Part shown: in pieces, positions 1,926 through 30,206 of the stretch
Layout: each line of letters opens with the position of its first letter
How positions within the stretch are numbered: position 1 is the stretch's first letter
Origin: Trichoplax adhaerens
Lineage: Eukaryota > Animalia > Placozoa
Reading direction: 5' to 3'
Assembly (NCBI RefSeq): GCF_000150275.1
Contig: NW_002060950.1
Span: forward strand, 1,476,106 to 1,540,105
DNA: 64,000 nt
Program-made: the position numbers and the translations under genes
The notes under the pieces: model-generated
The model's database searches: none
What the model was told of the DNA's origin: nothing
What the model saw: only the letters and a program-made list of their open reading frames with translations

Positions 1926-3023
1926 ATGAACTCATCCAATACTGTTAATAACTCATTTATCCCCTTTAGCGATTTTGAAGCTAATGCCCGTTTTATTGCT
2001 TACGCAGTTCTTCTTGCATTTACCGTCATTGGCAATATCATCGTCATAGAGTCATTTATTGTGGTTCGAACTCTTCGTACACCGTTTAACATTTTTCTTC
2101 TCAATTTAGCCACTGTTGATTTATTCACCGGTATATTTAGAATGGGTTTTTACCTCTTCAATATCGCTTATGCTAAAGGATTTGAGTGGCCGTTCAGTCC
2201 AGCGTTATGTAATTTCAGCGGTTGGGCATTAAGTATTGCTTTCTCAGCTAATGTTCATACCCTAGAATTAATGGCTATTTTTCGCTATATTGCGGTGGTT
2301 CATAATAACACCTACAATCTCACGCAAAAGAGAGCTGTTATATCGATCGTTTGCATATGGATTTATTCCAATATTATCGCTCTCCTTCCAATCATCGGTT
2401 GGAATCGGTATCGATATCAAGCAAACGAAATTGCTTGTTTACCTGATTGGTATTACGAAAGTAGCTACCCACTTTTTGTTACTATTTGCGATGTGATCAT
2501 TCCATTAACCATTCTATTCTACTGTTATGTGGCTATTTATATCACGATGAAGAAAACGAGTCGACGTTTCCGTGATATTTCCAATCAGGGCATGGATATT
2601 GCACTCCAGCAAATATCTAAACGAGAAGCTCGTGTTACGCGTGCCATGTTTTTGGTTTTCGTCGCTTTTCTTATTTGTATTGTGCCATATGCTGTCTGTG
2701 TATTCATCTTGTTCTCTATATTTCACATTTGGGTTGGTCGAGACATGGCATTTTTAACTGGTTATTTTGTTAATCTAAACAGTGCTATCAATCCTATATT
2801 GTATGGTTTCCTTTACTGCCGCTTTAGAAAAGCTTATTACTATACTGCTTGTTTGTGGTGGAGAAAATTATCCAGTATATTCACGATTCTATCCAGTCTA
2901 CACCATCGGCATAATAAAGTACGACTTGTGAAAGACTGTGATGGTGATTTCAATCGATCAAGAGGAACAGAAATTATTAGCATGAATCACCATGATCAAG
3001 CGGTCATTCAAGAAGTTGACTAA
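1926..3023 (+). CDS. Class A GPCR, opsin-like without Lys296 (placopsin-like), paralog 1
   Basis: Single-exon 365 aa ORF with 7 hydrophobic segments. Motifs: GN (TM1), NLATVD (TM2), WPF..LC (ECL1/TM3), AIFRY, PIIGWNRY...CLPDW (ECL2), REARVTR (TM6 start), NPILY, RFR (helix 8). Confidence 0.93.
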   Translation: MNSSNTVNNSFIPFSDFEANARFIAYAVLLAFTVIGNIIVIESFIVVRTLRTPFNIFLLNLATVDLFTGIFRMGFYLFNIAYAKGFEWPFSPALCNFSGWALSIAFSANVHTLELMAIFRYIAVVHNNTYNLTQKRAVISIVCIWIYSNIIALLPIIGWNRYRYQANEIACLPDWYYESSYPLFVTICDVIIPLTILFYCYVAIYITMKKTSRRFRDISNQGMDIALQQISKREARVTRAMFLVFVAFLICIVPYAVCVFILFSIFHIWVGRDMAFLTGYFVNLNSAINPILYGFLYCRFRKAYYYTACLWWRKLSSIFTILSSLHHRHNKVRLVKDCDGDFNRSRGTEIISMNHHDQAVIQEVD

Positions 3024-3074
3024 ACACTCAGTTATTTTCATCATCATAATCATGCTTTTACCAACAAGATGGAT

Positions 3075-3740
3075 TCCTATTTTTTATAACAGGCAGTAGA
3101 ATGAAATCATTGATTGCCTTCGCCATCGCCTGTCCTATCCATTTTACTTTGGATAATTACAATATTATCTAATGAAAAATATGCACAGCGCTATTGCAAG
3201 ATTTACGCTTATCCATTCCTGACAAAATACGGTTACTGTATAGTGTATTATTATAGGAGTCTATGCTATGTCTAAGGTAGTATGCTAGCTAATATGGTTA
3301 GCTTCGTTAAAAGTATCTCGCATTCAATCCTGTAAAATCATCGTTATCATGCCACACTACTTATGTATTTCAATATGAGTATAACTCCAACGCCTTTCTT
3401 CTCAAAGTGAAAACGATGGTAAGCAATGGTAGGATTTCTATTTTATCAGATTGCCGATTTAAATACTTCTTGCTTTCACCATCGCTTATTCAATCTATCT
3501 TACCAAGGTAATTATAACACTGTCTAATGAAAAATGTAAACTGCATTGTAGCAAGATATGCCATTCCTGATAAAGTATATCGCATTATAGGAGTCTATGC
3601 TATGTTAAAGGTAATACTCGCATGTTAGCCAGTATGGTTAACTTATCCTCACTATGCTGCCATATTTCTTACCGCCCTGTATGCTTTTAATATTAATATG
3701 ATTCAAACATCTTTTCTCTCCAAATACAAATGATTAAGCG
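3075..3740. repeat. Degenerate two-copy tandem duplication (~350 bp unit)
   Basis: Shared blocks tctaatgaaaaat, ccattcctga, attataggagtctatgctatgt and tatggtta occur at ~3170-3300 and again at ~3520-3640. Confidence 0.7.
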
Positions 3741-6049
3741 TGTATAGAAATAAATAAACTTATTCTGTTATGTTGACAAATACTTCTGAGGACCTTGATA
3801 TCTATGTAAAAGGATACAAATCGATACAAAGGGATGCGTAATCCTTTATAATCTAATAACAAGCTATCCCTCTCTCTTTCGATTGTTATCCACCTTGACT
3901 ATTACAGATGTTAGCCTAATTACAGGGCGCTAACAGAACTCATGAACTCAGTGTTTTACTGACTATTTGCACGATCTTTCATTGAGAAGTCCACTACATG
4001 GACAAATCGAAATTTGGAGCAATCCTTAATAAATTCTATCTTTGTCGCTTAAAGTAGTTTTCTTACTTCACTTCATCTTACTTTACTGATGTAAAGCTGA
4101 TCTGTAATTAATATTGTACATTATAGTCTAGTAAATAAAAAGTAAATAAAAAAATGCTTTTCATAAACGTTCGTCCATCTGTTCAGATTATTCTAGCCTA
4201 TTCTATCATCTATACTGCCGTCGATCAACATGATCAGCTAGTATGCCCTATAATCAATTTGTCAGCAATAGCCGTCCATTTAACAAGTATAATAAATTCA
4301 AAATATTCTCATATAATTACGTACTGTCTATCGATATCTTTGATTTATAAAAGTTTTTAGTAGCGGCAATAACTAGACTAAACCAGTTACGGTTGCTATA
4401 AATGAATAGAATCGTATTTTTGGCTAACGTATTTAATTTTCTTTTGTAATAGAATAATCAAGAAATGTTATCTCCATAATAATTAGATATAAGAAAATCA
4501 ATTTTTCTTACTATAATAAAATCCATTTACCCAAAAGTCATGCTAATCATTCAATGGCATGAGTGAATCAAGGTTCAACTGATTTATAACTGAATTACGA
4601 ATAATTTTCGTTACACTATTCGCCCAATATTATGAACAAACAATTTCAATCACGATGATATTTGATACAGTTTACTCTAGTTACATTAACTCAAATTTGA
4701 TATACAATTCATCCTACATTAAAGATTGCTGTACTGCTAATATCTGATCAAAGGCAAACCAATTATTCAACAAATCAAGGCTAAATACAATCGTGACTCA
4801 AAAAAATATCATATCGCTACAATCAGCTGTCCAGCCAAGCTCTGCTTCAACAATACAATTGTACTACTGTGACAGGGTATTTTAATTAGACATCATTTCA
4901 AGTTTGCTAAATTTAGGTCCATGATGCCATATAGGAAAATGGAGAATTCTCGTTGTTACTTACGTGGTAGCAATGAACTAAAAAAGAGTACCTCACCAAT
5001 ACATATCGATATAGTCTATCGCGGAGTATTCTAGATCTTATTAATACTTATTCAAATCTACGCGTATACTGAATCAATGTAGCTGAAAATTTAACGATTG
5101 AAACTTGAATAATAACTCTGGTAATTCTATGGTAAGAATATTAATTTCAATCGGCTAGTCTTATGCCAGGAAGCCTATGTATTATATAGTTGTTCCCAAT
5201 TTTTTATTAACAATTTATGAATACACTTATATTAATTATGGATTGAAAAGTTCACGATACCGGGAACGATTGACGAATTACTTATCGAATAGGACGTGAA
5301 ACTGTTATACAAATTGTGTAGTTGATCTGCTACCGCATCAAATCAGATAATTATAGCAAATAACAATCAATCTATTTTTGATACCAAATTATAAAAACTT
5401 GATTCTAAAGCACAAAATTGAAACTAAAAGTTAGGATTATTCAATAATAATTGATTTATCTCAATAGTCGATATTGTAACGACGGAAACAGAAATATACT
5501 TGAAAGCGGATAGTAAAATAGTATAGCACAACGTATTATTAGTCAAATTTTGTACAGTTTCGTCCTGATTTTCGTATTTGCACAATTTGTTATTTCTATT
5601 ACGGAAGCGTTCTCAGTTTAATCTCAGTTAGGAAATGGTTAAAATCTCTTTTAAGATGCTTAGAGCCTTTGAATGATTTAAAATGTAATTTATAGATTTT
5701 ATTATTATACAAATATAAATTCAAAATAGGATTTCCTTTCCCTTTCAGCTCTTAGATATCTGTCTTTTATAAATCGGAAATAAAGTGACAAAGAAAAATT
5801 GATAATCTAATTATAAATAATTTACTACAATTCATATCGAAGTTTTTATAATTGCTACTACTGTGAACGCTATCATTAAATAAACATAAACTACTCGTAT
5901 ATTAGTTCCGCTCTACTAAGTAAAAGTCAAGCTAATTTCAAATATTGCTTCAAAGTTGGGCAATTTTGATTCATAATTAATATGTGGATACCCCGTTAAG
6001 AGAAAATTACGGTGAATGAATAAATTATTGAATCGAAAAATTTTTTCGA

Positions 6050-7080
6050 TCCTGTAACTTCGAACAACGATATTCAAGATAATTTAACTCAAATTTAATA
6101 TAAAATTATCGAATATTTCACTTAATTTGAAGGCTATACTTAGAAAAAAATGATTACGAAATCATAATGAATTCGTCAATATTATATTTCTGACGTTTTA
6201 ATAGTGAATGGGGGGGGGGGTAGCTTTGAATCAGCTAGAATGCAACAAAAACCGTCAATAATAACTTCAGCAACGGTATTTAAGATAATTTAACTCAGAT
6301 TCGGTAGAAAAAATATAAGATAAATCCTTTTATTTGAAAGCTATAATTAGACAAGATAACTGCGTTACCGTCTAAGTATATTATCATACTTTTGACGTTT
6401 TAATAGTAAATGAAGCTAGGTTGAAATCAGCCAGAATATAATGAAGTCGATCATTATTATTTTCAGTAAGCATAAATGGAACTGTAGGCATTCATTTCGC
6501 TTAAGCCATAGTGCCTGGACAGTATCATCTTTTATATTATACTACCGTGGGATGATATGCGAATACACTATCGAGAAAAAAAACACAGTAAATAAGTAAA
6601 CTATTCAATCAAAAAAATTTGGTCAATTTCTATGACTTCAAACAACGATATTCAAGATGATTTATTTAGCTCAAATTCGATGTAAAATACGGAATAAATC
6701 TCTTTATTTGAAGGCTATAATTAGAGATGATGGCTGCGTTATCATCTAAGTATAATATGATATTTTTGACGCTTTAATTGTAAATGAAACTAGATTGAAA
6801 TTAGCTAGAATGTAATAAAGTCAATCAATATATGTACAGCAAGCATGAGAAGAGCTGCAGGTATTCATTTTGCTTTAGCCATAGTACTAGGACAGAATCA
6901 TCTTTTATATCATTTGTGACTTCATCACAAAACGGCGAGATCTTGCGGAGGCAATCTAGCAAGCTATTTGGTCCTAAATTGAATCGATATCTTATGATAA
7001 TTTTAGACTACACTAGAGTTGAAACTACTAGCACTCTTTTCATTTTAGCCATAGTACCGGGGTAGGATCATCAGTTATAT
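6050..7080. repeat. Degenerate tandem repeat (~3 copies of 200-370 bp)
   Basis: aacga/gtatt(c/t)aagataattta at ~6065, 6270 and 6645. tgacg(t/c)tttaa..gt(g/a)aatg at ~6190, 6390 and 6765. ttagccatagt..cggac/gt at ~6500, 6875 and 7045. One copy carries a G11 tract at 6210-6220. Confidence 0.75.
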
Positions 7081-9199
7081 TATTTTTTATGTTCTCATTA
7101 TAAAAATACAGCATATTCTATCATAATTTAGCAAGTTATACAATACTGTACTACATTGAGTCGATATCTGACGATAATTTTAAAACACATTAATCGTCAC
7201 TAAAAGCTTATCTTGGCTAAGACAGTATCATCAGAATACAACATATTTAACATTGATATATTATTAATACAAAATTTTTATTTACAATTGATAATATAGC
7301 ATTCAAATTAACTTTAGTGACTCTTATGGAATATTAAATACAGTTTTAAGCAGTTACTATAACGTTATGAATTCTTTCAATAGGTTACCAATGTAGTAAT
7401 ACTGAAAATTTTTGTAGTAAAGGACTAAAAGTAGAGTCCTTTATAGCTTTTAGTATGTAACTAGTATTATTTTACTATAGAAAATACCTAGAAAGTGATA
7501 GCGTCTTTTAAGTTTTACCCCGCCACATCATCATGTCGCCATCTTTTCTTCTTCTTCATTTTACAAGGTATTATATAGATTACTATAGAAGTATCCCTAG
7601 AGCAGTTGCCTAATCTAAAGAAAGGGCGTTTGATCGTCTATTCAAATTGTAAATGAATTTGACTTAGTAACAAAAAACCCTATCCTTAGAGACAGGGGAT
7701 TTATAATATGACAATAAAGTACTGTAATGTAGTCTATAATCGTAGAGCTACCGTACAACCTGACGCTAAAACATCAACTGTCAATACTCAGCGATACTAA
7801 TGTCAGAAAAATAGTCGTAATAGTCATATAAAATTTTTTGATAAGTGATTACTGTGATCTTTATAAAATCCGGATTTTTGGGATTGGGATTCCGGAGCCG
7901 GTCGGATTTATGTCCGATATAATTTTTCTGTATTAATTTATCTATTTTAATTTTTCTGTTTTAATTTTTGGATTTTAGTTTATGGAAAATATCGTAAGAG
8001 TTGATTTTTAAAATTTGAACTTTTCGTTATGAATTTGAAACTTTAGAATTTTATGACGTGACATGAAAGACATTAGGAAAGTTTAGTTAGGAAAATAGAA
8101 AATAAGATGGAAATTGGCAGAGGTTGTATTGATTGTTAAGTAGTTAGGCTGTTATTTTTATGACTAAATCTTGATGTTTAAAGGTTAATTTTTAGACTTT
8201 TATAGTGTATTAATGATAGAAATTATGTTAGAAGTGAAGTTTGATGTATTTTATAGTTAACTTGTTGATTTTATAGTGTTTTGTAACGGAATCATAGGGT
8301 AAATTGTGTCTGAACTTTGAATGATTTTTGTTTTCTTAAATGGTGCAAAGTAGTTTTCTAAAATGGATCTTAAGAGCGATTGGTTAGTAAATCTTTAGTT
8401 CTAAATACATCTGACGGCTCTACGAAGCCTATAAATGATAGTGCAATAAATTGTTGTTCGATTATTTCCCCAAATTTTAATTGGTGTCAAAGTTTCGTTT
8501 AGTCGACCGGAGTGCAACGAAAGTAGAATCAAAGTTTGTTAAAGTTTTGTAGCTTGATCTATACACTTTTCATTTCATTACATTTTGAAGATATTTTTCA
8601 TGGTTAAGTTATTATATATTGTGACTATGTACGATAATTTCTGTTCTATTGAAGGTTGTATAGCTCCAACCACAATCGTAGCTTCCCCAAAAACTAACAT
8701 AATTTACTTGATGTCAAAAATTAATTTGATGAGCTATTAATTATCCATCAGGCTACCAGAGAAAAATACTTCAGAAAAGACCATTATTCATGTATCCGTT
8801 AAGAAGTATCAATGGTATTGAATGTTTCATTTCGAAATGAATATACGCATAGAGTAATTAATAAGGGTTAGAATTCACTACTTTCTATAGAAAAACTCCG
8901 CCTAGCCTTCCATATGTTTATAATGTGATATTGAATACTTTGTTCAATATAGGAAAACAACAATCTGTGCTGAATTCAAAATTGAATGCTTCTAAATCAT
9001 GTACTTCTCTTAATAAAGATAAGTGTGCTTCAAAGAAACTGTTTGCTTTACTAACTATTAAAATAACTCAAATTGGAAGTATTATACATTATTATCTATC
9101 CATATATCATATACTAGATGGTATTTTCAGAATTTTATTACATGTAAAGCTTCATGCAGCTACTATATGAATATCAAAGAGAAATGTAGTCTTCAATTA

Positions 9200-9530
9200 A
9201 TCAATCAGTCTTTACTCCACAAGGCTATCCGAAAGTTCTTGTAATGGTTATACTGGATTATCATAAAGATCTTTATTTCGATTTTAATTTGTAAGAATGT
9301 TAAAAAGAAAGCTGTACAATCTATAATTAGGCAATGAAACTTCACTTCATAAATATATGCGAAAGTTCATGTAATGATTATACTGGCTAATCGTAAAGAT
9401 CTTTATTTTTAGTTTGTAAGAATATTAAAAAGAAATCTGTAAAATCCTTGGTTAGCCAATATAACTTTACTGTGTAAGGATATCCGAAATTATGTGCAAT
9501 GATAATCTTTAATAGTAAAGATCTACATAT
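9200..9530. repeat. Three-copy tandem repeat (~125-130 bp)
   Basis: cgaaagttc.tgtaatg.ttatactgg...atc.taaagatctttattt at ~9230 and ~9360, with a degenerate copy at ~9485. Confidence 0.75.
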
Positions 9531-11281
9531 CTTTTGTTTCAAGCATATTTCAAAGCTAGAAGTCTTTATACTTGTATTTCAATAGCATTACCAACTTGTG
9601 TCGTAAGTTATTCATTACTGTAAATTTCGGCTACGAAAGATTTATTCAGCTCAATAGTTGAAATACTGCAATGAGCAAATCTGCAACAGTTAGAATCAAT
9701 CTTATTATAGTCGTCAATAGTATTATAGTACATTAATATAATTACCGATTTCGTTAGTTATTCTTAAATATCAGAATTATTGGCCTCTCTATTAAAATTT
9801 TTTATCTCCGAACTAGCATGAAAAACTGCTATTCATTCTTCTTGTTCTTCAATAAGATTATTATTATTTAAGGTGTAAGACAGATTACCCTCTATTGCTG
9901 GCTCATTTATTAAATAATGCCATTAAAAATGATTCCATAATAAGGCGTTGATGAATTTGGTTTTCAACAGTTCTTTTAGAGCATTGTATAATTATACATG
10001 GGCGTAATTGTTTCTGATTAATAATTTACTTTATATCTAGGAATTGATGTTAATAATACAACTGAACAGTGATTGAAATTCTCCTTTAAATTTAATTTCT
10101 TATTGAGTTTATTGAACAATGAGGCTATTGATAATATGCAAGTTTAAGTAACAGGGAATTACTTACATTTTCCTGGATTGAATTAAATCTCGTCAAATAT
10201 GATCTTAAATAGTTTATGTCAAAGTATCGATTTTATGGTATTCATGGTTATTTTTGATTAGTGAATAACAAAAAGGTTTCATTATAATTAAAGCAGATAA
10301 TAAGAATAATATTCATGAAATCACAAGAGAAAATAGAATTTCAGATCTTATTGAGCAAATTATCACCACATTAATAAACGCATATGCATTCATGTAATAG
10401 TGCATTTTGTTGCGAATGTATCAAAACTCAATGATTGATATATCAATATAAACCATAGAGAATGCTATCATTTCAGTTCTGATAAAATATTCGAGATGAA
10501 AGACTTCTGGCAGCTTGCGATATCATTTCTAAGTAAGGAGTTTAGATTACAACCTTTCAGAATAGCTTTAATTTTCGACATTGATAAATCATTGATGTTT
10601 TCGTTATGACAGAGGAAATAATTTAGAATAATGCTATCATAATAGATTATTTTCTGATTGATTGGAACTTGATGATGGTCAAAATTAATTTTTCATTCAA
10701 TTGTTTATTGAATAGAAGTTAGATAGTTAATGGTTGATTATACTCATATGATTTTTTCCCCGATAGATTATAATTTACCGATTCTATCTTATGAAGAGTT
10801 ACAACTTGTCCTTTCTCTCAATGATCAATCTCTCATATTACTGAGGGTTCAGTGATATTTTAATAAAGCTAAACTACTATTTGCAAGATAAAAGTATGAT
10901 TCTATTAGGGTATTACTTACAGCAGTTTTAACCGATTTAAAATTGATGCGTACACACAAGATAGAATACTAGAAAAGAGAAATAGAGACATTTCAAGAAA
11001 TTATAAAGGAGGTAAATTTTAACATTTCAATAGAATCAGCCTACAATTAATTGTATTTATTTCGTAAGTAAACCATTCTTGAATTCGCAGCAAAACAAGG
11101 ACTCTTATCAGCGAATATTCAATTTGCAATAGTCTAAATTCTCTCTTGGGCTTATGCTATTTACCATAAGTAAGATGTAAAAACTAATTATCAAGATTAA
11201 GCCTACGCTATCCATAGAATCATCTCCGTAGTCGAATTTCAATCTATTGGAAGTACTACTAGCAAAACAATATCCAAAGTC

Positions 11282-12397
11282 ATGAATAATACTAGCGGTT
11301 CCAATGCAACCGCATATCCTGAAACAGCTTCACATCCATTTATAAGTCTTCAATCTCATGTACCATTTATTGCTTATGTGATACTCCTTATTGCCACAGT
11401 TGTTGGCAATTGTATGGTGATTGCTGCATTTTTCATCAATCGATCATTGCGCACTATTTTCAATTCACTTTTATTCAATTTGGCATTAGTAGATCTATTT
11501 GCGGGTATATTTCGCATCGGATTTATCACTCTATCATTAGGAACAATCCACAACGGTTCTTGGCCATACGGTCCAACATTATGCAATATAAATGGCTTAG
11601 TCCATAGCGTTGCTTTCTCAGCTAATGTTCACACATTAATGACGATTGCTATTTTTCGCTACCTGGTGGTAGTTCGCTACAGAAAAGATTGGATCACCCG
11701 CAATACTGTTATTGTAGTCATCAGTCTAATTTGGATCTACAGCTTGCTATTAGGATTTCTTCCCATTATTGGCTGGAATCGCTATCACTACCAGCCCTAT
11801 GAATATACTTGTTTGCCGGATTGGTATCGCGGCAAAAGCTATTCTATCTTTTTAACGATAGCTGATTTTCTGATTCCAATGCTGGTATTATGTTACTGTT
11901 ATTTGGCGATATATAATTTTATCAAAAAAAATAGCCAACGTATACGAGCCTTTTCTATCAATGGCAACGAAGCTGCACTACAGCAAATTATTCACCGCGA
12001 GACAAAAGTAACACAAGCCATGTTTATTATCTTTATAACTTTTGTTGCTTGTGTAGCTCCCTATGCTATTTGTATTTTTGTCATGTTGTCTATTTTTCAT
12101 ATTTGGGTTGGTGCACATGTTGCATTTTTTTGTGGTTACATGGTCAATCTAAATAGTGCTATTAATCCTATTTTATATGCAATATTCTATAAACACTTTA
12201 GAGCATCCTTTTATCGTCTATGTTGTATCGCTCATAGGCGTGCTAGCATGATCCGTGGCAATCGAAGAATACTAATATCAAACAAGGTGTATGCTACTAC
12301 TACCAATGGCAATCAAACTTGCCCGATAATGAGATCGACCATAAGATCCACCATAAGATCGAAAACAACTGAAACACTATTACAAACTGCACATTAA
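11282..12397 (+). CDS. Class A GPCR, placopsin-like, paralog 2
   Basis: 371 aa intronless 7TM ORF with NLALVD, WPYGPTLC, AIFRY, GWNRYHYQPYEYTCLPDW, RETKVTQ, NLNSAINPILY and KHFR. Confidence 0.93.
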   Translation: MNNTSGSNATAYPETASHPFISLQSHVPFIAYVILLIATVVGNCMVIAAFFINRSLRTIFNSLLFNLALVDLFAGIFRIGFITLSLGTIHNGSWPYGPTLCNINGLVHSVAFSANVHTLMTIAIFRYLVVVRYRKDWITRNTVIVVISLIWIYSLLLGFLPIIGWNRYHYQPYEYTCLPDWYRGKSYSIFLTIADFLIPMLVLCYCYLAIYNFIKKNSQRIRAFSINGNEAALQQIIHRETKVTQAMFIIFITFVACVAPYAICIFVMLSIFHIWVGAHVAFFCGYMVNLNSAINPILYAIFYKHFRASFYRLCCIAHRRASMIRGNRRILISNKVYATTTNGNQTCPIMRSTIRSTIRSKTTETLLQTAH

Positions 12398-13984
12398 GCT
12401 GTCCAAATAATTCCATCAATAATTCATTTTTAGCGATAATTAAACCATCAAATAGCGCTATCAGATTACAAATTGTTTTAGCATTTAAGAAAATTGGCTT
12501 AATACGTTATTATTTTAATTGGTACGATTAAATTCACATGTGTGTGATTTTGTTAATTTACTAAAAAGTAATAACTTCTGCTTTACTCGTTATGAATCAT
12601 GAATAAACTGACCCGTAATTCTACAGTCAAATCTTATAAAAGCTATGTATATTACTCTTTTGGATACAGTCAAACAGATTAGGTTAAAATTTAAAACCAT
12701 AGATAGTAGAAGAAAATGAAACTGAAACGAAATTTTCATTCTACTTGTATTAATGTCAATTATTGTTAAAGTAGAATTCATTAAATACTACAATGACAAC
12801 ATTCCAGATTGCATTGAATGATTTCTTTTATATAGTTGTATTCAATTCTAGCCTGCTATACCTGCGAACCATGTTAGAGAGGCAATCATGCTGCTTTATC
12901 TTAATTTTGTTCGTTAAATCTTACTTTTAGCATAAAATTAAAATTATCAGCCTTAAATAATCACCTTCTTCAATATCTTTACTGATCAAAATATTAGCTA
13001 GAACAGTGATAGACTACGTTCCTATTGATTTTCAGGTAAACATTCCTTTAAGATTCTCACTATTTTTGCATCCTGATATCCTTTTCTTAATATCAATATT
13101 GTTAACTACAATTCTATCTCAAATCAATATTGAAATATACACGTGATCTCATCAATTAACTTGCGTATCAATTTATTAATTGATTATATTATCATCCTTT
13201 ATTGTAGATTCAGCTACTAAATATTAATCTAGTTTAGGTATCATAAACGCTCAGCCACGTATATACTTAAAAAATAGAAACGACGATGCCATCTTAGCAT
13301 ATTATCCTACTAACGATCGATATCTGTACAAATGTAAATATAAACACATATTGAAATCTACCTTATAGAAAAGTCAATATGTCGTAGAGATACCACTTTC
13401 GATATTTAATTCTCAATAAGATCGTTAAAAAATTTATCATATGTACTTTACACTTGCCTTCGCGATATACTCATACAATAAGACTATTCACTAAATAAAA
13501 ATTTTTACAAGAAATTGGCCACAACAACGAAAATATTAATGTCCATTTATTATGTATTCGCGCAAAGACTTCTCCCAAACAATTTACTATTATTTATCAA
13601 TGATAGTGCTAAGCGATCAATTTACTGTAAATAAAAATATCTTAGCCAAGTTGTTGTTTCAATTTAAAGTTATAATTGTTAATTTATCTTACCCTGAAGT
13701 TATTCTGTATCATCGATACAAGTAGTGTAGTAATACCATTTTAATGGTAGCTATCTCAACGAAAGGTATCCATATTATTGTAATAAATACTATATACTAA
13801 TAGTACGAACACAGTAAAACATTGTTCATTGTTAAATCATACTGTATCATTAGAATATTATTATGGTTATTAAATTATTGGTATCGTCATTTCTATCACA
13901 AAGTTATACTTAATTGTATTTATGCACAGAGTTCAATCTTTTTTCTTTTTCTCAGAATTAGTAGTTTGTATAATGATGGAATAA

Positions 13985-14635
13985 TGTATGTCAAATAATA
14001 CAGCCAAGAAACTTTAATTTCTTGTAAAATTTCACTATATTACATAAATTGGTTGGTCTACTTAATTACCGAGTACTATCTGCCTTCAGTCTACAATCGT
14101 CTAACCTATTACACAAGGTTTACGATTTATATGCAATATGTATTGTGGATATCATCTACAAACAGAGCTTTTTAATCTGATAATTTAATGTATAATTTAA
14201 ATTACATTCACTCAATCTTATAATCTTAATAATAGTACAATAAAGTATGTTAAATACTACGGCTAAAAATTTTTTAATTTCTTGTAAAATTTTACTGCAT
14301 TACATAAATTAGTTGGTCTGCTTGATTTTCAAGGACTATCTACCTTCGACCTACAGCCGTCTGATCTATTATACAAGATTTACGATTTATATATATAATA
14401 TAAACTGTATTATGAATATAATCTGCAAACAGAACTTGTATAATTTTACACGCAATTTGAACTAAATTTACTCAACCTTATAAACTTAATAATCATGCAA
14501 TGAAAATATATCAAGTAGCAGCACTACAGCTAAAAATCTTGAATTTTTTTGTAAAATTTCACTATATAACATAAATTAGTTGGTCTACTCAATTACCAAG
14601 GACTATCTACCTTCGACCTACTGCTGTCTAACTGA
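13985..14635. repeat. Tandem repeat, ~2.5 copies of ~265 bp
   Basis: ttgtaaaattt.act..at.acataaatt.gttggtct.ct..att...aggactatctaccttc at ~14020, 14280 and 14550. Confidence 0.85.
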
Positions 14636-16221: not shown

Positions 16222-17451
16222 TTAATCAGACACATCATTATAGATAAATTCAGTAGCCACTGGAGATTCATCACTTTTACAACGGAAACTCTTAGTGGAA
16301 ATTCCGTTTCTCGGTATTAGACTAGGTCCCTTTGAGGGAAATTTGGTCCTTCTTGTCGTCGTAGCTCTTATAATATTCGTTACATTGTTGTTGCTATTAC
16401 TTGTTAAAGGAATGGCATCGTCTCTCTTCCAACGGAGACTAAAAATGCGGATGTAAGCACGTTTAAAGCGATCATTAATGAACGGATAGACTATAGGATT
16501 AATGACACTGTTGAGATTAACCATCCAGCCACAAAAAAATGCCATCGCTCCACCAACCCAAATCTCAAATGCCGAAAGTAACAGAAACATACAAATACTA
16601 TAAGGTCCAAAGCAAATAACAAATGTAGCAAAGACGATGAACATCGCGCGCGTAACTTTAGCTTCGCGGGCTGCTATTTTTTGTAAAGCATTATTGTTAG
16701 CGCCACTAAATGAAATACCACGAATACGCTGACTATTTTTCTTAACAGTCCAATAAATTAATACATAGCAATAGATCATGATGAGAAGGGGTACGGTAAA
16801 GATAGCTACCATGACAAAAATAGGAAAGCTTTTATCATAATTCCAATCTGGCAGACATGTCTGTTCTAGTGGCTGAAATTTATATCGATTCCAACCAAAG
16901 ATGGGCATCAATCCTTCGATTATACTGAATATCCAAGTAACACAGATAGAGAGTGTTACGGTAAATCTAGTCACTAAATGGCCTTTAGAGTGGACAACAA
17001 CGAGGTAACGGAATATTGCCATGATTAGTAGACAAAAAATATTGGCCGTAAAAGCTACACCTTGGATCCAGCCCCCAAAATCGCATAGGGCTTGACCGAA
17101 CGGCCATGTCCAACCAACTACTCTCGTCATCCCAATAAGATTGAATCCCATTCGAAATATTCCAGTAAACACATCGATCACAGCCAAATTCAAGAGAAAT
17201 AAATTGAAAGTAGTAAACAGTGATCGTTCAATATAAAAAGCTAACATAACGATTATATTACCAAGAATAGACAGGACAGCAATAACAACATAAGCAGTGG
17301 CTCGAGCGATCATTTCTTCCTTAGTATAGGGTGGAGGAAAGTGAGGCACAGTAGCATTCATAGAAGTTGGCAATTTTAATGTCTGATTAGCTATACTTTG
17401 ATTAGTGCAATTGGATAGGGTTAAAATTGCAGTCTGATTAGTACAATTCAT
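16222..17451 (-). CDS. Class A GPCR, placopsin-like, paralog 3 (inverted)
   Basis: 409 aa intronless 7TM ORF. N-terminus has several N-x-S/T sites. Motifs: NLAVID, WPFGQALC, AIFRY, GWNRYKFQPLEQTCLPDW, REAKVTR, NPIVY, DRFK. Confidence 0.93.
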   Translation of the reverse strand: MNCTNQTAILTLSNCTNQSIANQTLKLPTSMNATVPHFPPPYTKEEMIARATAYVVIAVLSILGNIIVMLAFYIERSLFTTFNLFLLNLAVIDVFTGIFRMGFNLIGMTRVVGWTWPFGQALCDFGGWIQGVAFTANIFCLLIMAIFRYLVVVHSKGHLVTRFTVTLSICVTWIFSIIEGLMPIFGWNRYKFQPLEQTCLPDWNYDKSFPIFVMVAIFTVPLLIMIYCYVLIYWTVKKNSQRIRGISFSGANNNALQKIAAREAKVTRAMFIVFATFVICFGPYSICMFLLLSAFEIWVGGAMAFFCGWMVNLNSVINPIVYPFINDRFKRAYIRIFSLRWKRDDAIPLTSNSNNNVTNIIRATTTRRTKFPSKGPSLIPRNGISTKSFRCKSDESPVATEFIYNDVSD

Positions 17452-20400: not shown

Positions 20401-21398
20401 ATATTAGAAATTAAACTATACTGTAGTCAATAATATCAGTCTCATCTATCTGCTATCTTGCGGTACTTCACATAAGGACCAATAACAAAGGATTATTGAT
20501 CAGTTAGCTTCCTCCTTTAGTAGATCTATTGAAAAACTCGGGCATAAAGCTAAAAGTTGAACTATATGAACTAAATGAAATGATCGATACAATTTTCAAT
20601 TTATATCACCATTTATCGGCTTTGTAGAGCTACTGATAGTCCTATGAGTCATGATATTATCATCTTATCATGAACTTTTAGAATCATTTTAACGATTGTG
20701 TTTTTATAATAAAAGTTCTTATAAAATCTTATAAAACACCGAATACTGACAGAATCACTATGGAATACTTTCAACTAATTTGACTAGTACTACTGTTGAG
20801 AAGGCAAATTATTGGCCTTTCAATGTCAGATTTCAACCAATAAAACAATAATCAAAGTTTTTTTCTTTAATATGATATCTACATTCCGTCAATATAGTAA
20901 CAAAACTACGCAAACATAAATTCGCATATAAAAGCGATACTCTTACAACCTCATAATGTTGAACATCACGATAGTTTTGTATCGCAGCCTAAACATTTAA
21001 GGTATTATTCCAGTCTGACATTTGTATATAAAAGAGAGAATACAACAATACAATCTAGAAAAGCTATCAAATACGTTTCTCTGAAGTACCAAAGAATAGA
21101 TTATCGTTAACTGATAGGAATTTTAAGGAATATTACAAATACACCGGTAATAATTCTTTGTAACGCTAACTCTAGACTTAATTATAAAAAAAATTACCTT
21201 CCAGAAATTCATTAAGCAGAATAAATCTCATTATTACAGTATGGTACTATTTTATTTTGAATCAAAAAATTTTAATATAACATTAACAGTACAAGAAGTT
21301 TAAGTCAATCATAGCAATAAGATCTAATTGCTGAACTTAATACCTGTATATATATACTCGTATTCGGGTATATATTCAGTATACAACTAGCTAGAATT

Positions 21399-21540
21399 TG
21401 GCGAAATCATTAATCTGACCTTTATAGTATACAAATAAATGAAAATTGGCGAAATCATTAATCTAACTTTCAGTATTGACCATAACATACCGTATATATA
21501 TAGTAGACGTGTAAGTGGAAAGTGGCGAAATCATTAATCT
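21399..21540. repeat. Three exact copies of the 18-mer TGGCGAAATCATTAATCT
   Basis: Copies at 21399-21416, 21447-21464 and 21523-21540. Confidence 0.85.
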
Positions 21541-22853
21541 TGCTTGCAAGCATCTAATAGACATTAAAAAATATCATAATCACAATTTATCGTACTATGA
21601 TGCTATCGCAATAATAAATTAACCTATGGAGATAAAGTGTAGGATCTAATTTGTAGACTTATATGTTCAGTACGTAAACCTGCTGAAGTCATTTAGTATT
21701 GAGCCTTGTAGCATCATTTCCACATTGCACCCACTGACTGTAAACATAACCATACTTACCACCTAAAGTATAGGATATACCGTAGTTTTTATTTCTAAAT
21801 TCTCATACAATTTACTGAAATTCTGTCTATAACACCATACGTCGAGACTTTTACAAGAATTAATTATTTCTGTCTAGAAACAATCAATCGTTTCAAATAT
21901 ACGTGTACGTATGTTGGATTTGAGTCCATGTATTAAATTTTTAGACGATAATAAAGCTTTGTTCTATTAAATAAATTAAAGGAAAGAGCTACTAGCCAGT
22001 ATTACATCAGATAGAATCTGAGAAAATATAATAAATTTGCTTTACCAACAAAAGAAAAACAATAAATATAACGTGTTGTGATCGCCCTAAATAGAATTGG
22101 TAGGTAAGAAGAAACCGCATCATACTATAGTCATAGTTTATCATTTTGAGGTAGCTTGTTATTATGATAATCAATACTTTTATCCTTCGAAATAGCTAGT
22201 ATTTACTTTAAGTGTATCAGATGTTTCTGTCCTCTATTATTAAAATATGCAAATTGCTGTATGATTTAAATAACAAAGAATATTGTTAGTAAAGGAGTAA
22301 TTGTACTGAAAATTAGTAAAGTTAGTATTGGAAAAATTCTCCAATACCCGCTATTAGTGTAAGGTATCAAAATTATCGGATACAGTACTCAGCCGTGTAA
22401 GCGAAAGTTTTATAGAAATTGCTCTAAATTGAAAGGGCTAAATATTGATAGCATTGGATAATAGTTACGAAATCTCTGTAAGATATTCCACCTAAAGTAT
22501 TCAAACAATATAGATTGACGACGTGATTACTAGTATTGTATACTGAAAAGAATACTGACATAGCTAATTATCAAATTGCTACTACGAAGAAAAAATGATT
22601 AAGTATTAATCGGTTAAAATTCTAAAGATAAAAGACTTGGTTACAATTTTAACGGTTTACATAGCAATTGAAAAAGCACTTTATATAAATCAAAGCTATA
22701 CAATATTACTTTATTGTAGATTAACAGCTTGTTTTGGTGTAATTTATTTCCTTCCCATTAAAGACTAAATTTACTTGATCTGTGTAAAAAGAATCAGATA
22801 CAATATTCTTGTTTTCAAGGCCTGCTATTGAAAAGGATTAAAACACGAGTATA

Positions 22854-24008
22854 ATGTCTAATCATAGCCTTAGCTTAAATCAGACTAGGGGATTTACACC
22901 GTATACTCTTGCTGAAGCTCAAGTACATTTTACTGCTTATGTGATTGTGATGGTTATAGCTATCCCTGCTAATATAGTCACTATTTTTTCTTTTATCATC
23001 GATCGTACATTGTGTACCAATTTTAATCTCTTCTTGCTTAACATGGCTTTCATCGATTTATTGACCAGTTTATTTCGCATCGGTTTCAACGCTTTCTGTA
23101 TTGCCACTATTAGAAATTCTACATGGCCATATGGTCAGCCACTATGTGATTTTGACGGATTTATACAAGGCGTTGTCTTTGCCGCTAACGTTTACACTCT
23201 CATGGTTATAGCAGTTTGCCGTTATATAGCAATTGTTCATTCCAAGCAGCATTTAATTACCAAAAAAATTGTCTATATTATTATTGTTATCATTTGGGTC
23301 TTTAGTTCCCTGTGTTCGGTCTTTCCTATCATAGGTTGGAATCGATATCGCTATCAACCTTATGAGCACGCTTGCTTGCCTGATTGGTCTTATGAGAAGA
23401 GCTATCCTATTTATATTATGGCTACCGAATTTGTTCTCCCAATGATAATTTTACTTTACTGTTACACCGGAATATTTATCAACCTAAGGAGAAATTCATT
23501 CCGAATGCGCACTGTTTCAGAATTGAACAGTGGCAATAATGAGGCCATGAAGAAAATAGCCCAGCGTGAGGGAAAGGTTACTCGTGGCATGTTTATCATC
23601 TTCTTAGCCTTCGTCATTTGTTTTGCACCATATAGTGTATGTATGTTTCTATTAGCTTCTGCATTTAATATTCCCATAGACAAGGGTTTGATGTTCTTTT
23701 GCGGATTTATGGCCAATGTGAATAGCTTACTGAATCCTATTATTTATGCTATCTTGTATAAACGCTTTCGGCAAGCTTACTATCGGGTGCTGTGTTGTTG
23801 CTGCAGTAAATTAACATTCAGCTCTTCATCGGATCATGCAGGATGCAGTAGCAATCACGGATTGCGATCATTAGCAATGGGTGCCATCGAAAATAAGAAC
23901 GCCAATCATTCTACCAGTCCATCTATGAAAACTTCTAATTATGGCAGTAAAAAATATCGAAGGCGTTTTAGTTTCATCTACAACGAAGAGGACATTAATA
24001 ATAGATAA
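22854..24008 (+). CDS. Class A GPCR, placopsin-like, paralog 4
   Basis: 384 aa intronless 7TM ORF with NMAFID, WPYGQPLC, AVCRY, GWNRYRYQPYEHACLPDW, REGKVTR, NPIIY, KRFR and a Cys cluster after helix 8. Confidence 0.93.
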   Translation: MSNHSLSLNQTRGFTPYTLAEAQVHFTAYVIVMVIAIPANIVTIFSFIIDRTLCTNFNLFLLNMAFIDLLTSLFRIGFNAFCIATIRNSTWPYGQPLCDFDGFIQGVVFAANVYTLMVIAVCRYIAIVHSKQHLITKKIVYIIIVIIWVFSSLCSVFPIIGWNRYRYQPYEHACLPDWSYEKSYPIYIMATEFVLPMIILLYCYTGIFINLRRNSFRMRTVSELNSGNNEAMKKIAQREGKVTRGMFIIFLAFVICFAPYSVCMFLLASAFNIPIDKGLMFFCGFMANVNSLLNPIIYAILYKRFRQAYYRVLCCCCSKLTFSSSSDHAGCSSNHGLRSLAMGAIENKNANHSTSPSMKTSNYGSKKYRRRFSFIYNEEDINNR

Positions 24009-27000
24009 CGAAATAGATGGAAATTTTAAATTCAAATTCAAATGCAAATCTATAGATATTGAATGTATCGCAATTGCACATTTATGGAGCGGTGCTATTT
24101 ATTGGCTGGACTGGATAAAATTCAGTGAAAAATTGGCTATCTTTTCTATCCGAAATTCATCGAAATAGTAATTTTATGAATTATAAACAAAAACATTTTG
24201 CTAATCCAAGAAGTTTCATCATCAAGTGCATATTTAATTTCTATATATTTAATACCTCGGATCAGTCAGAGGAAATTAAAAATTATTCTGTATTATATAA
24301 ATTGAAAAGTACTGCTTCTAGCTAGTAGTTTCATCCTAACTATCAAAATTCACACATGCGATGTTTCTACTACTTGCCTTCTATCTTGCCGTTCAGAATT
24401 TCTCCTTTTCTGGTTCTTAGTTCAATTTTTCTTGTAATTTTTTTTGGAAAGTTGATTTAATGTATCGTGTACATACTGAGCCGTTTAATGTTGTTGGTAG
24501 TACTAACTTCCCATTAATTCTTGGACATTGATTAGGTATGGTACTATTGATTACTCAGCAGTCTTTGTAGTACTAACAATTTTATCTAATAGGATCGGTA
24601 TATTCGTATATTTGTATTAGTAACTTACTATGGTTATCTTAATTTGTTTGCAAGTATAAAAGAGCATCTGAAAGTACCGGTATCTATTTGTCAAATTTTA
24701 TTTTAGTGATACGATGTCGTCATATTGTAGATTTTATCATCGAAATACTGCTCGTACGTATACAGCAGATATACAATAATCTTTCCTTATTCTACTTGTA
24801 TTAAAATTATGATATCACCTAGCGTAAGAGTATGCTTTTTGCCAATCTAGGATATCATTTGGTTAGAATATCATTCATGGCCGAGGAGATACGGTATTCA
24901 TTAGCTTACTTGAACATTTTTCTTTGACCTTAGCATGCTACTTTGTAAAATAAGCATTGCCTGCGATTTGAATGCAAAAGCTGTTACTACAAGTGCGTTT
25001 TGGCTATTTTTAAGAATAGATTCGGTCTTAGGAATGTCCGTAGTCAATCTTAAGAATTTGGCCTTAATTAAACATGGTCGGACATTACTAACACTTTTAC
25101 GAAAACAGATTGAAAAGGTGTTACTGTATATTCTTTCGGTTAGTTACTAAGACATTTTTGATTGTAATATATATATTCGAATAGAATCAATTTCAAATTG
25201 GTACAAGTGTATGAAATGTTCAGTAAATCTGATTATGATGTTACGATATGATCGTTTGAAGCATATGATATCATGAATTAATAAAAATTATGACAATCTA
25301 TGTCTTAACAATTTCGTAATAAAAATTGATGTACCAACTTTGTGTATGGCCCATATAAAATGAGTATAATTATAATACAATACTTACTATGAACTGTAGT
25401 AAATGGACTAACTCTATTTTTATTTAGAAAGTATTATCTTATTCCATATAGTTATTATATAAAGTCGAAGTTTTTAAGCATTATCACGCATTTTTTCGTC
25501 ACAGTACCGTAATCTTGGCCATGAATTAGCTTCGTTCCTATTTAGAAAATTCTGCTTACTGCAGCTAATACGATTAAGATATGAAGCTGATTTTCTACAG
25601 TAGCTATCAGTACCTAATTTTCGTAATATTACTTGGCTGAATGAAATACGTATAATTTTATTTCTGCTTGGAAAATATATTTATCTTATTCAATAAAACT
25701 GAGATATAAAAGGATATATGATAGTTATTAACGCGTAAATTTTCGTGATATCCACTTCGCTAAATGAACTAACTCTATTCTATTTTCTGATAGAGAATAT
25801 TTCTCAGCTAACCAGATTTCAAATAATTGAAAATAGAATTGAGATTATAATTATTATTATTATGCTATTTTCGCATTAGTAGTCTTGTCAAGGGAACAAC
25901 TCTGTTTATATTTAGAAACTATTACCCATCTTACCCAATGATTAGACCACTCTTTCAGTGGCGTAGCAAGCTTTCTGTAGTGGTTGAAAGTTATTCAGCT
26001 ATAGTGCAGCCTTTAATTCGATCTTTTAAATTTTCAAGGTATTTATATTTAATTTAGCTCATATTCCCCATAAACAGATCATTTCCACCGTGGGCAATTA
26101 GCTCCCGATGTTTTTGTTCATTTTTACCGCAGTATTGAGCAACTTTATGTCTTTAAAATTTCTAATGCAAACCAACGGTCACTGGTAAATGTACACTGTA
26201 CAGTCAATTCAACCAGTATACAAGTTACGCTGTAATAGTGGTCTATATAATTTGAATATGAGATTAAAATTAATATTGCCTTTTTACTCAATTTGCAATG
26301 CTAACTATTCTAAATCATAGCTAGCCCAGTTTCTATTTAGAAACGAGTGCTTACTGTGACCATTATAATGAAAATATAGAATTAAGATTATAGTTATCTA
26401 CGAACTATTTATTATGCTTATTTCAATACAGAAACAATTATTTATCTTACCTATTTTAATGAGGATATTAGAAATTGAGATTATATCGTAGTTTTCAGTA
26501 AGTTATTTTTCGTGATACGTGTACGCATACTGTATAAGGGACCTGTCACAAACTTCGTTTGTTACTATGAATTCTTCTTCCATGATTACCTGTAAAACCT
26601 TCTACCGTATTATAAATCTACTACCAAGCGTCAATACTTTCACTACCTTGACGAAGGACCTTAGTCAACAGTAAGAGCTAGTTTAGAAGTTTACTAGGTA
26701 ATATTACAGAAGCTATCTTTATTCAACTGTCGTTCCACTCCACAGCTTAAATTACTATCCTCTCTTTTTTAAGTACAAATGCGCTTACTTATATGCTTGT
26801 GCCAAGCCCCACCTGTACAATCTATTCATTATTTCCTATACCGTAATATAGTCTTTTTCTGTACACATGTAATTATATCTGTTTCTGTCCTCTATTATTA
26901 AAATATGCAAATTGCTGTATGATTTAAATAACAAAGAATATTGTTAGTAAAGGAGTAATTGCACTGAAAATTAGTAAAGTTAGTATTGGAAATTCTCCTA

Positions 27001-27511
27001 TACCCACTATTAGTGTAAGGTATCAAAATTATCGGATACAGTACTCAGCCGTGTAAGCGAAAGTTTTATAGAAATTCCTCTAAATTGAAAGGGCTAAATA
27101 TTGATAGCATTGGATAAATAGCTACGAAATCTCTGCAAGATATTCCGCCTAAAGTATTCAAACAATTTTAAAGATTGACGACGTGATTACTAGTATTGTA
27201 TGCTGAAAAGAATACTGACATAGCTAATTATCAAATTGGTACTACGAAGAAAAATGATTAAGTATTAATCGGTTAAAATTTTAAAGATATAGACTTGGTT
27301 ACAACTTCAACGGTTTACATAGCAATTGAAAAAGCACTTTATATAAATCAAAGCTATACAATATTACTTTATTGTAGATTAACAGCTTGTTTTGATGTGA
27401 TTTATTTCCTTCTCATTAAAGACTAAATTTACTTGATCTGTGTAAAAAGAATCAGATACAATATTCTTGTTTTCAAGGCCTGCTATTGAAAAGGATTAAA
27501 ACTCGAGTATA

Positions 27512-28627
27512 ATGTCTAATCATAGCCTTAGCTCAAATCAGACTAGCGGATTTACACCGCTTGCTAATGCTGAAGCTCAAGTACATTTTACTGCTTATGT
27601 GATTGTGATGGTTATAGCTATCCCTGCTAATATAGTCACTATTTTTTCTTTTATCATCGATCGTACATTGTGTACCAATTTTAATCTCTTCTTGCTTAAC
27701 ATGGCTTTCATCGATTTGTTGACCAGTTTATTTCGCATCGGTTTCAACGCTTTCTGTATTGCCACTATTGGAAATTCTACATGGCCATATGGTCAGCCAC
27801 TATGTGATTTTGACGGATTTATACAATGCGTTGTCTATGCCGCTAACATTTACACTCTCATGGTTATAGCAGTTTGCCGTTATATAGCAATTGTTCATTC
27901 CAAACAGCATTTAATTACCAAAAAAGTTGTCTGTATTATTATTGCTATCATTTGGGCCTTTAGTTCCCTGTGTTCGGTCTTTCCTATCATGGGTTGGAAT
28001 CGATTTCGCTATCAACCTTACGAGCACGCTTGCGTGCCTGATTGGTCTTATGAGAAGAGCTTTCCTTTTTATGTTATGGCTACCGAATTTGTTCTCCCAA
28101 TGATAATTTTACTTTACTGTTACACCGGAATATTTATCAACCTAAGGAGAAATTCATTTCGAATGCGTACTGTTTCAGAATTGAACAGTGGCAATAATGA
28201 GGCCATGAAGAAAATAGCCCAGCGTGAGGGAAAGGTTTCTCGTGGCATGTTTATCATCTTCTTAGCCTTCGTCATTTGTTTTGCACCATATAGCATATGT
28301 ATGTTTCTATTAAAACCTGTATTCAATATTGAATTAAACAGGGGTTTGGTCTTCTTTTGCGGATTTATGGCCAATGTGAATAGCTTACTGAATCCTATTA
28401 TTTATGCTATCTTGTATAAACGCTTTCGGCAAGCTTACTATCAAGTGCTGTGCTATTGCTACAGTAAATTAACATTCAGCTCTTTAGTGGATCATGCAGG
28501 ATGCAATCGCAATCACGGATTGCGATCATCAGAAATGGGTGTCATCGAAAATAATAACGCCAATCATTCTACCAGTCCATCTATGAAAGCTTCTAATGAT
28601 GATGGTAAAAAATATCGAGTGTTTTAG
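27512..28627 (+). CDS. Class A GPCR, placopsin-like, paralog 5 (recent duplicate of paralog 4, shortened C-tail)
   Basis: 371 aa, colinear with paralog 4. A 2-nt deletion near the end (cgaaggcgttttag vs cgagtgttttag) gives KKYRVF* instead of KKYRRRFSFIYNEEDINNR*. Confidence 0.92.
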   Translation: MSNHSLSSNQTSGFTPLANAEAQVHFTAYVIVMVIAIPANIVTIFSFIIDRTLCTNFNLFLLNMAFIDLLTSLFRIGFNAFCIATIGNSTWPYGQPLCDFDGFIQCVVYAANIYTLMVIAVCRYIAIVHSKQHLITKKVVCIIIAIIWAFSSLCSVFPIMGWNRFRYQPYEHACVPDWSYEKSFPFYVMATEFVLPMIILLYCYTGIFINLRRNSFRMRTVSELNSGNNEAMKKIAQREGKVSRGMFIIFLAFVICFAPYSICMFLLKPVFNIELNRGLVFFCGFMANVNSLLNPIIYAILYKRFRQAYYQVLCYCYSKLTFSSLVDHAGCNRNHGLRSSEMGVIENNNANHSTSPSMKASNDDGKKYRVF

Positions 28628-28651
28628 CTTCATCTACAACAAAGAGGACAT

Positions 28652-29911: not shown

Positions 29912-30182
29912 TTGCGGATTTATGGCCAATGTGAATAGCTTACTGAATCCTATTATTTATGCTATCTTGTATAAACGCTTTCGGCAAGCTTACTATCAAG
30001 TGCTGTGTTATTGCTACAGTAAATTAACATTCAGCTCTTTAGTGGATCATGCAGGATGCAATCGCAATCACGGATTACGATCATCAGAAATGGGTGTCAT
30101 CGAAAATAATAACGCCAATCATTCTACCAGTCCATCTATGAAAGCTTCTAATGATGATGGTAAAAAATATCGAGTGTTTTAG
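29912..30182 (+). other. Second copy of the 3' end of GPCR paralog 5 (probable alternative haplotype)
   Basis: Matches 28357-28627 and encodes the same peptide (CGFMANVNS...KKYRVF*). It starts exactly at the gap edge. Confidence 0.8.
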
Positions 30183-30206
30183 CTTCATCTACAACAAAGA
30201 GGACAT

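Follow-up and report, generated by a model that had tools for sequence, protein, structure and literature searches.

The window analysed here, a stretch of 64,000 nucleotides of Trichoplax adhaerens contig NW_002060950.1, contains between positions 1926 and 28627 five intact, single-exon open reading frames (ORFs) of 365–409 codons that encode class-A G-protein-coupled receptors (GPCRs). We interpret these five genes, with a probability of about 0.7, as a tandem array that is young and specific to its lineage, made up of orphan GPCRs of the rhodopsin class, which are likely small-molecule chemoreceptors. They are not opsins: asparagine replaces the retinal-binding lysine, glutamine occupies the site of rhodopsin Glu181 (E181), Trp6.48 is absent, and the genes fall outside the opsin clade. 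Their opsin likeness is limited to features common to melatonin-like and other relatives. Nor are they a new receptor class; they are already in the literature under Tadh152, Tadh162, Tadh164 and the “Trichoplax opsin outgroup” XP_002114593. An earlier note on this DNA had proposed that this five-gene subfamily moved the positive charge of its pocket from the seventh transmembrane helix (TM7) to an arginine in TM2, so that its ligand might be anionic. That reading is not supported: since the arginine is found across a whole placozoan clade, proven amine receptors included, it does not point to an acid-sensing pocket.

Five receptors with a rhodopsin-type lid

The five genes are listed below with their candidate pocket residues, all positions being counted from the class-A anchors N1.50, D2.50, R3.50, W4.50, P5.50, P6.50, and P7.50.

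Gene 1: 1926..3023, plus strand, 365 amino acids; R2.57, S3.28, L3.32, FRY, I6.48, N7.43; Tadh162 in the alignment of 10.1101/2025.04.18.649542; 99% identical to RDD42762 of Trichoplax sp. H2 (auto-named “rhodopsin”).
Gene 2: 11282..12397, plus strand, 371 amino acids; R2.57, N3.28, H3.32, FRY, V6.48, N7.43; H2 orthologue RDD42734 (auto-named “Melanopsin-B”).
Gene 3: 16222..17451, minus strand, 409 amino acids; R2.57, G3.28, Q3.32, FRY, F6.48, N7.43; H2 orthologue RDD42733; AlphaFold2 (AF2) model m6d6dcc8d9a8c.
Gene 4: 22854..24008, plus strand, 384 amino acids; R2.57, D3.28, Q3.32, CRY, F6.48, N7.43; Tadh164.
Gene 5: 27512..28627, plus strand, 371 amino acids; R2.57, D3.28, Q3.32, F6.48, N7.43; Tadh152, exact sequence; lies within a tandem duplication (period 4658 bp).

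All five ORFs match the full 260-position Pfam 7tm_1 model end to end (E 1e-40 to 1e-44). Identity is 40–48% to gene 1 and 89% between genes 4 and 5, and the DNA of the window has a G+C content of about 30%. The motifs quoted in the earlier note were all recovered, from the ORFs, the Pfam matches, the counting from anchors and the alignment of a family profile to bovine rhodopsin by HMMER. This profile was built from the five genes plus four proteins from Logan/ENA (P0001–P0004; P0002 is on Logan contig SRR30664516), whose nearest window gene is gene 3, at about 50% identity.

Every gene carries an arginine seven residues after D2.50 (position 2.57), an asparagine seven residues before P7.50 (position 7.43), the motif GWNR[YF]..Q..E..C..DW in the second extracellular loop (ECL2), and a start of TM6 of the form RE.[KR]V[TS][RQ]. 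The profile aligns with bovine rhodopsin without gaps from P171 to Y192, with identical ECL2 spacing; in this alignment, the rhodopsin residues R177, E181, Q184, C187, D190, and K296 correspond to R, Q, E, C, D, and N of the family, respectively, E113 to position 3.28, and A-E247-K-E-V-T-R252 to the start of TM6 (rEakVTR). The loop spacing, Cys187, Asp190, the Gln at the E181 site, the Glu at 184, and the Asn at the K296 site are thus present in 5/5 genes, as had been claimed, and so is the variation at the E113 site, which holds S, N, G, D, and D in genes 1 to 5. In addition, two features that the earlier note did not mention were found in all five genes, namely the change of the DRY motif to FRY or CRY and that of W6.48 to F, I, or V.

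The family resembles animal opsins (bovine rhodopsin, melanopsin, peropsin, and pinopsin) in this gap-free segment with its R177, C187, and D190, in the E6.30-x-x-V-T-R start of TM6, in NPxxY, and in a predicted ECL2 beta-hairpin. In contrast to the opsins, it has Asn in 5/5 genes and in 4/4 orthologue-like proteins at position 7.43, where 12/12 reference opsins have Lys; it has Gln in 5/5 genes at the E181 site, where 12/12 reference opsins have Glu; it lacks W265, and it is three residues longer between D2.50 and C3.25 (D83–C110). Lysine is absent from both 7.43 and 2.57 in the five window genes. This supports the part of the earlier note that saw a tandem array of non-photoreceptive, opsin-like placozoan GPCRs without the Schiff-base lysine. 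The equation of the TM2 arginine with rhodopsin G90 stands only in part: HMMER opens a two-residue gap in TM2 that sets the Arg opposite F88 and the following Gly opposite G90, so the equation is true only when counting from D2.50.

The AF2 model of gene 3, made from a nine-sequence alignment, has a mean predicted local distance difference test (pLDDT) score of 70, with 80–94 in the transmembrane core, and a predicted template modelling (pTM) score of 0.67. It shows TM2 as a single helix that spans residues 81–110, R100 included, without a break, and the strands of the ECL2 hairpin at 190–193 and 198–201. By helical periodicity, the residue at D2.50+7 should face the core of the bundle.

The rhodopsin-type ECL2, pointed out in the earlier note, is not specific to opsins. 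Molluscan melatonin-like receptors share the spacing from W4.64 to Cys45.50, the Cys at the 187 site is likewise found in melatonin-like receptors, and Asp occupies the 190 site in 10/15 melatonin-like and 8/10 H2-like receptors. The window family keeps an ancestral lid of the rhodopsin/melatonin type, formed by TM4 and ECL2, with its spacing, its Cys187 disulphide position, and the residues that match R177 and D190. These two residues form a structural ion pair in bovine rhodopsin, and the window family holds equivalents of both; going by the sequences, their pairing would leave a single Arg facing acids without a partner of their own, namely Glu45.47 (the Glu three residues before the ECL2 Cys) and, in genes 4 and 5, also Asp3.28.

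A placozoan clade with a basic residue in TM2

Three trees were computed under LG+C20+F+G4 with posterior mean site frequencies (PMSF) and rooted on peptide receptors, with named opsins and melatonin-like receptors added; the T. adhaerens paralogues included were genomic ORFs identified by short motifs from the supplement of 10.1101/2025.04.18.649542. The window family was monophyletic in all three trees (starred support of 99) and was placed within a placozoan-only clade (97, 99, and 95, all starred). The opsins were monophyletic without any placozoan sequence, with starred Shimodaira–Hasegawa approximate likelihood ratio test (SH-aLRT) values of 100, 97, and 99, and the window family was placed outside them in every tree. 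The placozoan clade includes Tadh170 (P0049/L012), Tadh168 (L016), Tadh153 (L017), and Tadh165 (L014), which form the sister subclade of a 23-row group holding the window family; the window family is monophyletic with these four receptors and, like them, has a residue other than an acid at 3.49 and other than Trp at 6.48, as well as a basic residue at 2.57, where Tadh165 has Gln. Aminergic receptors formed a separate clade in all trees, and their classical signature (Asp3.32, Tyr7.43, Trp6.48) is absent from genes 1 to 5, which have L, H, Q, Q, Q at 3.32, I, V, F, F, F at 6.48, and Asn at 7.43.

The deep position of the placozoan clade was not stable between trees. It grouped with melatonin-like and other orphan receptors in two of the three trees, with unstarred SH-aLRT values of 90 and 85, whereas in the third tree it adjoined a group named “HKY” after the residues that replace DRY. 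Approximately unbiased (AU) tests, run on a 59-row set in place of the 106-row set, rejected neither a constrained clade with opsins (lnL +0.51, p 0.544) nor one with melatonin-like receptors (lnL −2.46, p 0.47). The opsin kinship proposed in the earlier note is therefore left with a sister relation that is not rejected but was not recovered in any of the three trees, the family lying outside monophyletic opsins. That neither sister is rejected agrees with the published disagreement: Feuda et al. (2012, 2014), as relayed in PMC4159004 and PMC9368030, describe placopsins as Trichoplax opsin-like GPCRs without Lys296 that are sister to opsins; Guhmann et al. (2022) did not recover the opsin–placopsin sister relation; and Yanez-Guerra et al. 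placed placozoan amine receptors with melatonin receptors (10.1101/2025.04.18.649542).

As regards the melatonin receptors, the likeness comprises the W4.64-to-Cys45.50 spacing, the frequent Asp at the 190 site, the absence of the DRY aspartate on both sides, and the grouping in two trees, which is unstarred and unstable. In contrast, of the features given for melatonin receptors in 10.1101/2025.04.18.649542 (NRY, YPYP in TM2, and the triad N4.60/ECL2 Phe/ECL2 Gln), none was found in the family, which has FRY or CRY, FR[MI]GF in TM2, Pro4.60, and C-L-P-D-W after the ECL2 Cys, and also lacks W6.48.

When the family profile was scored against 1.84 billion representatives, 34,725 matches at E ≤1e-3 were obtained. 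The family itself formed a first tier at 480–625 bits, followed by a second tier of eleven proteins at 198–285 bits, all of them in the placozoan-only clade and two of them T. adhaerens Tadh169 and Tadh163. From about 190 bits downwards, a flat plateau was reached, populated by many invertebrate orphans, by opsins (melanopsin and peropsin), and by melatonin-receptor-like proteins of molluscs and echinoderms. We also observed that a large group of invertebrate receptors (e.g., P0046, P0048, and P0052) has H-K-Y for DRY; one Limulus member is annotated as “histamine H2 receptor-like”, and the scores of this HKY group against the family profile equal the top among non-placozoan proteins. Among PDB sequences, the profile scored 144.5 bits against the histamine H2 receptor, 139.8 against bovine rhodopsin, and 122 against the melatonin receptor MT1; assigning the family from PDB sequence searches or Foldseek was rejected, as all class-A receptors score similarly. 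A word-indexed protein search with gene 3 returned, beyond Trichoplax, only adenosine A2b and CCR3 receptors, an artefact of shared 5-mers that played no part in the placement.

The profile gave 51 matches in the T. adhaerens genome, with the window genes alone at 545–623 bits; the window itself spans C1407:1476106-1540105. Eleven further paralogous matches (158–278 bits) lie at C1407:1180955-1466263, 10–300 kb upstream of the window; nine of them are intact ORFs in a single exon, Tadh163 and Tadh167 among them, whose number is completed by two fragments. Together with the window array, these paralogues make up a cluster of about 330 kb on one scaffold, whereas Tadh169 is located on another scaffold, C1413. 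The placozoan-only clade comprises at least 25 single-exon receptors, most of them in this cluster, and Tadh167 and some other neighbouring paralogues show nearly the full signature of gene 1.

The arginine at 2.57 is not special to the window subfamily, as had been supposed. Arg or Lys was found at D2.50+7 in 24/26 representatives of the placozoan clade (5/5 window genes, 4/4 orthologue-like sequences, and 15/17 others) versus 0/80 opsins, melatonin-like, H2-like, HKY, aminergic, adenosine, and peptide receptors. Across 18 T. adhaerens paralogues, position 2.57 holds R in eight, K in five, Q in three, I in one, and L in one. Judging from these alignments, a basic 2.57 is a synapomorphy of the whole placozoan clade, whose ancestral marks are the Arg at D2.50+7, the ECL2 Glu, and the loss of both the DRY acid and W6.48.

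Candidate ligands and competing explanations

The closest characterised relatives are Tadh153, Tadh165, Tadh168, and Tadh170, assigned to a “melatonin-receptor clade” in 10.1101/2025.04.18.649542. Like the window family, they belong to the placozoan-only clade (95–99, starred), are encoded by single-exon genes, and have Arg2.57 (Gln in Tadh165) and a Glu three positions ahead of the ECL2 Cys; the residue that precedes their RY is not acidic, and W6.48 is missing. Tadh170, Tadh168, and Tadh153, all with Arg2.57 plus E45.47, respond to tryptamine or phenethylamine with half-maximal effective concentrations (EC50) of 6.7, 30, and 43 nM, respectively (10.1101/2025.04.18.649542). A pocket with Arg2.57 and this Glu thus fits a cationic ligand and gives no sign of an anionic one. 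In contrast to the window family, the amine receptors have His3.28, Tyr or Phe at 7.43, and R-L-P in TM2, and have lost the R177/D190-type pair, whereas the window family has S/N/G/D at 3.28, Asn7.43, and FR[MI]GF in TM2, and has kept the pair.

We propose that the five receptors would be ligand-gated chemoreceptors for small polar metabolites. By analogy with the relatives, a cationic or zwitterionic, amino-acid-derived ligand seems likelier than a fatty or carboxylate anion, and specificity may come from the positions that are unlike those of the amine receptors, namely 3.28 (S/N/G/D versus His), 3.32 (Q/H/L), and 7.43 (Asn versus Tyr/Phe). Arg2.57 would probably belong to an internal polar network with Glu45.47 or Asn7.43, rather than being a free anion-binding charge. 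The subfamily evolves fast, and the near-neutral divergence of genes 4 and 5, with a ratio of non-synonymous to synonymous rates (dN/dS) of about 1.1 (13 synonymous and 53 non-synonymous differences), fits the birth-and-death evolution of a chemoreceptor array.

Several points weigh against this proposal. The amine-like ligand would be an extrapolation from paralogues, and genes 5 and 4 (Tadh152 and Tadh164) were cloned and screened in HEK293 cells with mixtures of 25 monoamine-related compounds plus polyamines, the same mixtures as the amine receptors, and gave no signal; the only responders in that screen were Tadh153, Tadh165, Tadh168, Tadh170, and Tadh173 (10.1101/2025.04.18.649542). Having been cloned and not being among the responders, both genes are screened orphans. 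In addition, the losses of the DRY acid and of W6.48 might reflect constitutive or atypical signalling, and a dN/dS near 1 could also be the consequence of the decay of one copy. Co-variation between 2.57 and 45.47, considered as evidence of a salt bridge, was dropped as too weak in view of two exceptions: in Tadh165, Gln2.57 accompanies the Glu, and in Tadh163, the Arg is combined with a Gln.

The model put forward in the earlier note, in which Arg2.57 is a relocated pocket cation that binds an anionic, carboxylate, or lipid-like ligand non-covalently, appears unlikely. The arginine is indeed invariant in the five genes, and its conservation in orthologues was borne out in 4/4 orthologue-like sequences; it is predicted, from the periodicity of an unbroken TM2, to lie on the core-facing side. 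Moreover, His3.28 and Tyr7.43, which are found in the amine-activated paralogues, are missing from the subfamily, and the two genes screened gave no monoamine response. However, Arg or Lys at this position extends over the clade, including the nanomolar cationic-amine receptors, and the candidate pocket acids (E45.47, D45.53, and D3.28 in genes 4 and 5) outnumber the bases. Lys7.43 was found in no non-opsin relative compared, so nothing suggests that the ancestors of these genes had a lysine at this position, or shows a relocation of charge from TM7 to TM2. The characterised carboxylate GPCRs have their Arg at 3.36, 5.39, 7.35, or 7.39, and are not known to use one at 2.57. In addition, the mixtures that left genes 4 and 5 inactive contained the carboxylates 3,4-dihydroxyphenylacetic acid (DOPAC), kynurenine, L-dopa, and 5-hydroxytryptophan (5-HTP) (10.1101/2025.04.18.649542).

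A further explanation, which we consider improbable, is that the receptors are ligand-independent or constitutively active through the lost DRY acid and W6.48 toggle, and act as scaffolds or under the control of inverse agonists. All five genes have FRY or CRY at 3.49–3.51 and F, I, or V at 6.48, changes of the DRY aspartate can raise basal G-protein signalling (10.1101/2025.04.18.649542), and the screen of genes 4 and 5 yielded no agonist. Yet Tadh153, Tadh168, and Tadh170 share both losses and are clearly activated by agonists, and the polar pocket residues are strictly conserved in orthologue-like proteins of about 50% identity, which argues for a bound ligand.

Finally, it is very improbable that the five are cryptic light sensors or opsin-derived proteins with a secondary loss of Lys296. 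In favour of this reading, the spacing of the ECL2 lid is that of rhodopsin, the PDB sequence of bovine rhodopsin ranks second among the matches to the family profile (139.8 versus 144.5 bits for the histamine H2 receptor), a jumping-spider rhodopsin shows the lowest root-mean-square deviation (2.6 Å) among the Foldseek PDB matches listed (ranks 1–50), and a clade with opsins was not rejected by the AU test, but there is no Lys at 7.43 or 2.57, the E181 site holds Gln, W6.48 is missing, the genes stand outside the opsin clade (97–100, starred), and their close paralogues are amine receptors.

Published names, gene models and wider meaning

In Supplementary File 1 of Yanez-Guerra et al. (10.1101/2025.04.18.649542), gene 5 appears with an identical sequence under the name TriAdh152, and gene 4 is listed as TriAdh164; the clade position that we give to these two receptors derives from our own trees. 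The published, transcript-derived C-terminus of Tadh164 departs from the ORF of gene 4 after ...SPSMKTS, reading SILPFRISPF... where the ORF has NYGSKKYRRR..., a mismatch that may reflect splicing at the 3′ side or a transcript with another end.

RefSeq XP_002114593 (TRIADDRAFT_951; 287 amino acids, “partial”) turned out to be a chimera, with the N-terminal two thirds from gene 2 and the C-terminal third from gene 5. The junction follows gene 2 as far as ...QQIIHRETK and continues with gene 5 from REGKVSRGMF..., joining pieces separated by about 16 kb, an interval that holds genes 3 and 4. This protein and its neighbour XP_002114592 served as “outgroup opsins from Trichoplax adhaerens” in a study of Limulus opsins (PMC4898813). 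The chimera has been widely reused as an outgroup, and being composed of two genes it can distort the rooting of opsin trees. Going by its adjacent numbering, XP_002114592 may be gene 1; this accession was not found in the supplements of the choanoflagellate GPCR paper.

The name “placopsin” has been applied inconsistently, as the accessions differ between papers: a GPCR survey from 2025 (10.1101/2025.04.15.649019) uses “Placopsin 2” for XP_002114592.1, whereas the placopsins of Feuda are given as XP_002113363 (Tadh173), XP_002112438, and XP_002112437 in 10.1101/2025.04.18.649542. The window genes resemble placopsins in being placozoan class-A GPCRs without the retinal lysine (Asn7.43), receptors of a kind used as the nearest outgroup of opsins. 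A sister relation of their clade to opsins was neither recovered nor rejected here.

Genes 4 and 5 lie in the tandem duplication, which was seen between 22222–24000 and 26880–28656. The non-coding flanks upstream of the two genes are 96–99% identical, in contrast to only 84% at the 3′ coding end. A partial copy is found further downstream:

Sixth-copy 3′ fragment: 29912..30211, plus strand, immediately downstream of an N gap; matches the 3′ end of gene 5 with 99% identity.

This fragment is most likely an assembly or haplotype duplicate and not an independent gene. The N run spans 29733–29911, and the approximately 425 bp preceding it (29306–29731) recur 1.42 kb downstream (30727–31153) with 98–99% identity. 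This repeat, together with the end of gene 5 after the gap, suggests either an insertion or a haplotype that was collapsed or duplicated. Elsewhere in the window, two large exons of a huntingtin homologue were identified on the minus strand at 43749–46325 and 48612–51014, with matches to Htt_N-HEAT (E 1e-156), Htt_bridge (E 5e-72), and Htt_C-HEAT.

As to the origin of opsins, we raise tentatively, and with the odds well against it, the possibility that this placozoan clade, and not the receptors originally named placopsins, is the true sister lineage of opsins. The five-gene family would then be its most rhodopsin-like branch, with its R177–D190-type lid, a loop spaced as in rhodopsin, and a TM6 that starts with E6.30-x-x-VTR. 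If this were true, the clade would preserve the pre-opsin state, a small-molecule chemoreceptor with an Arg2.57/Glu45.47 pair where opsins later evolved the Schiff-base system of Lys296 and Glu181–Glu113.

In conclusion, what is added here to the published description of these receptors is that a basic 2.57 and an ECL2 Glu mark the whole placozoan clade, which offers a cheap mutational handle on amine binding without Asp3.32 and a starting point for deorphanising the five genes.

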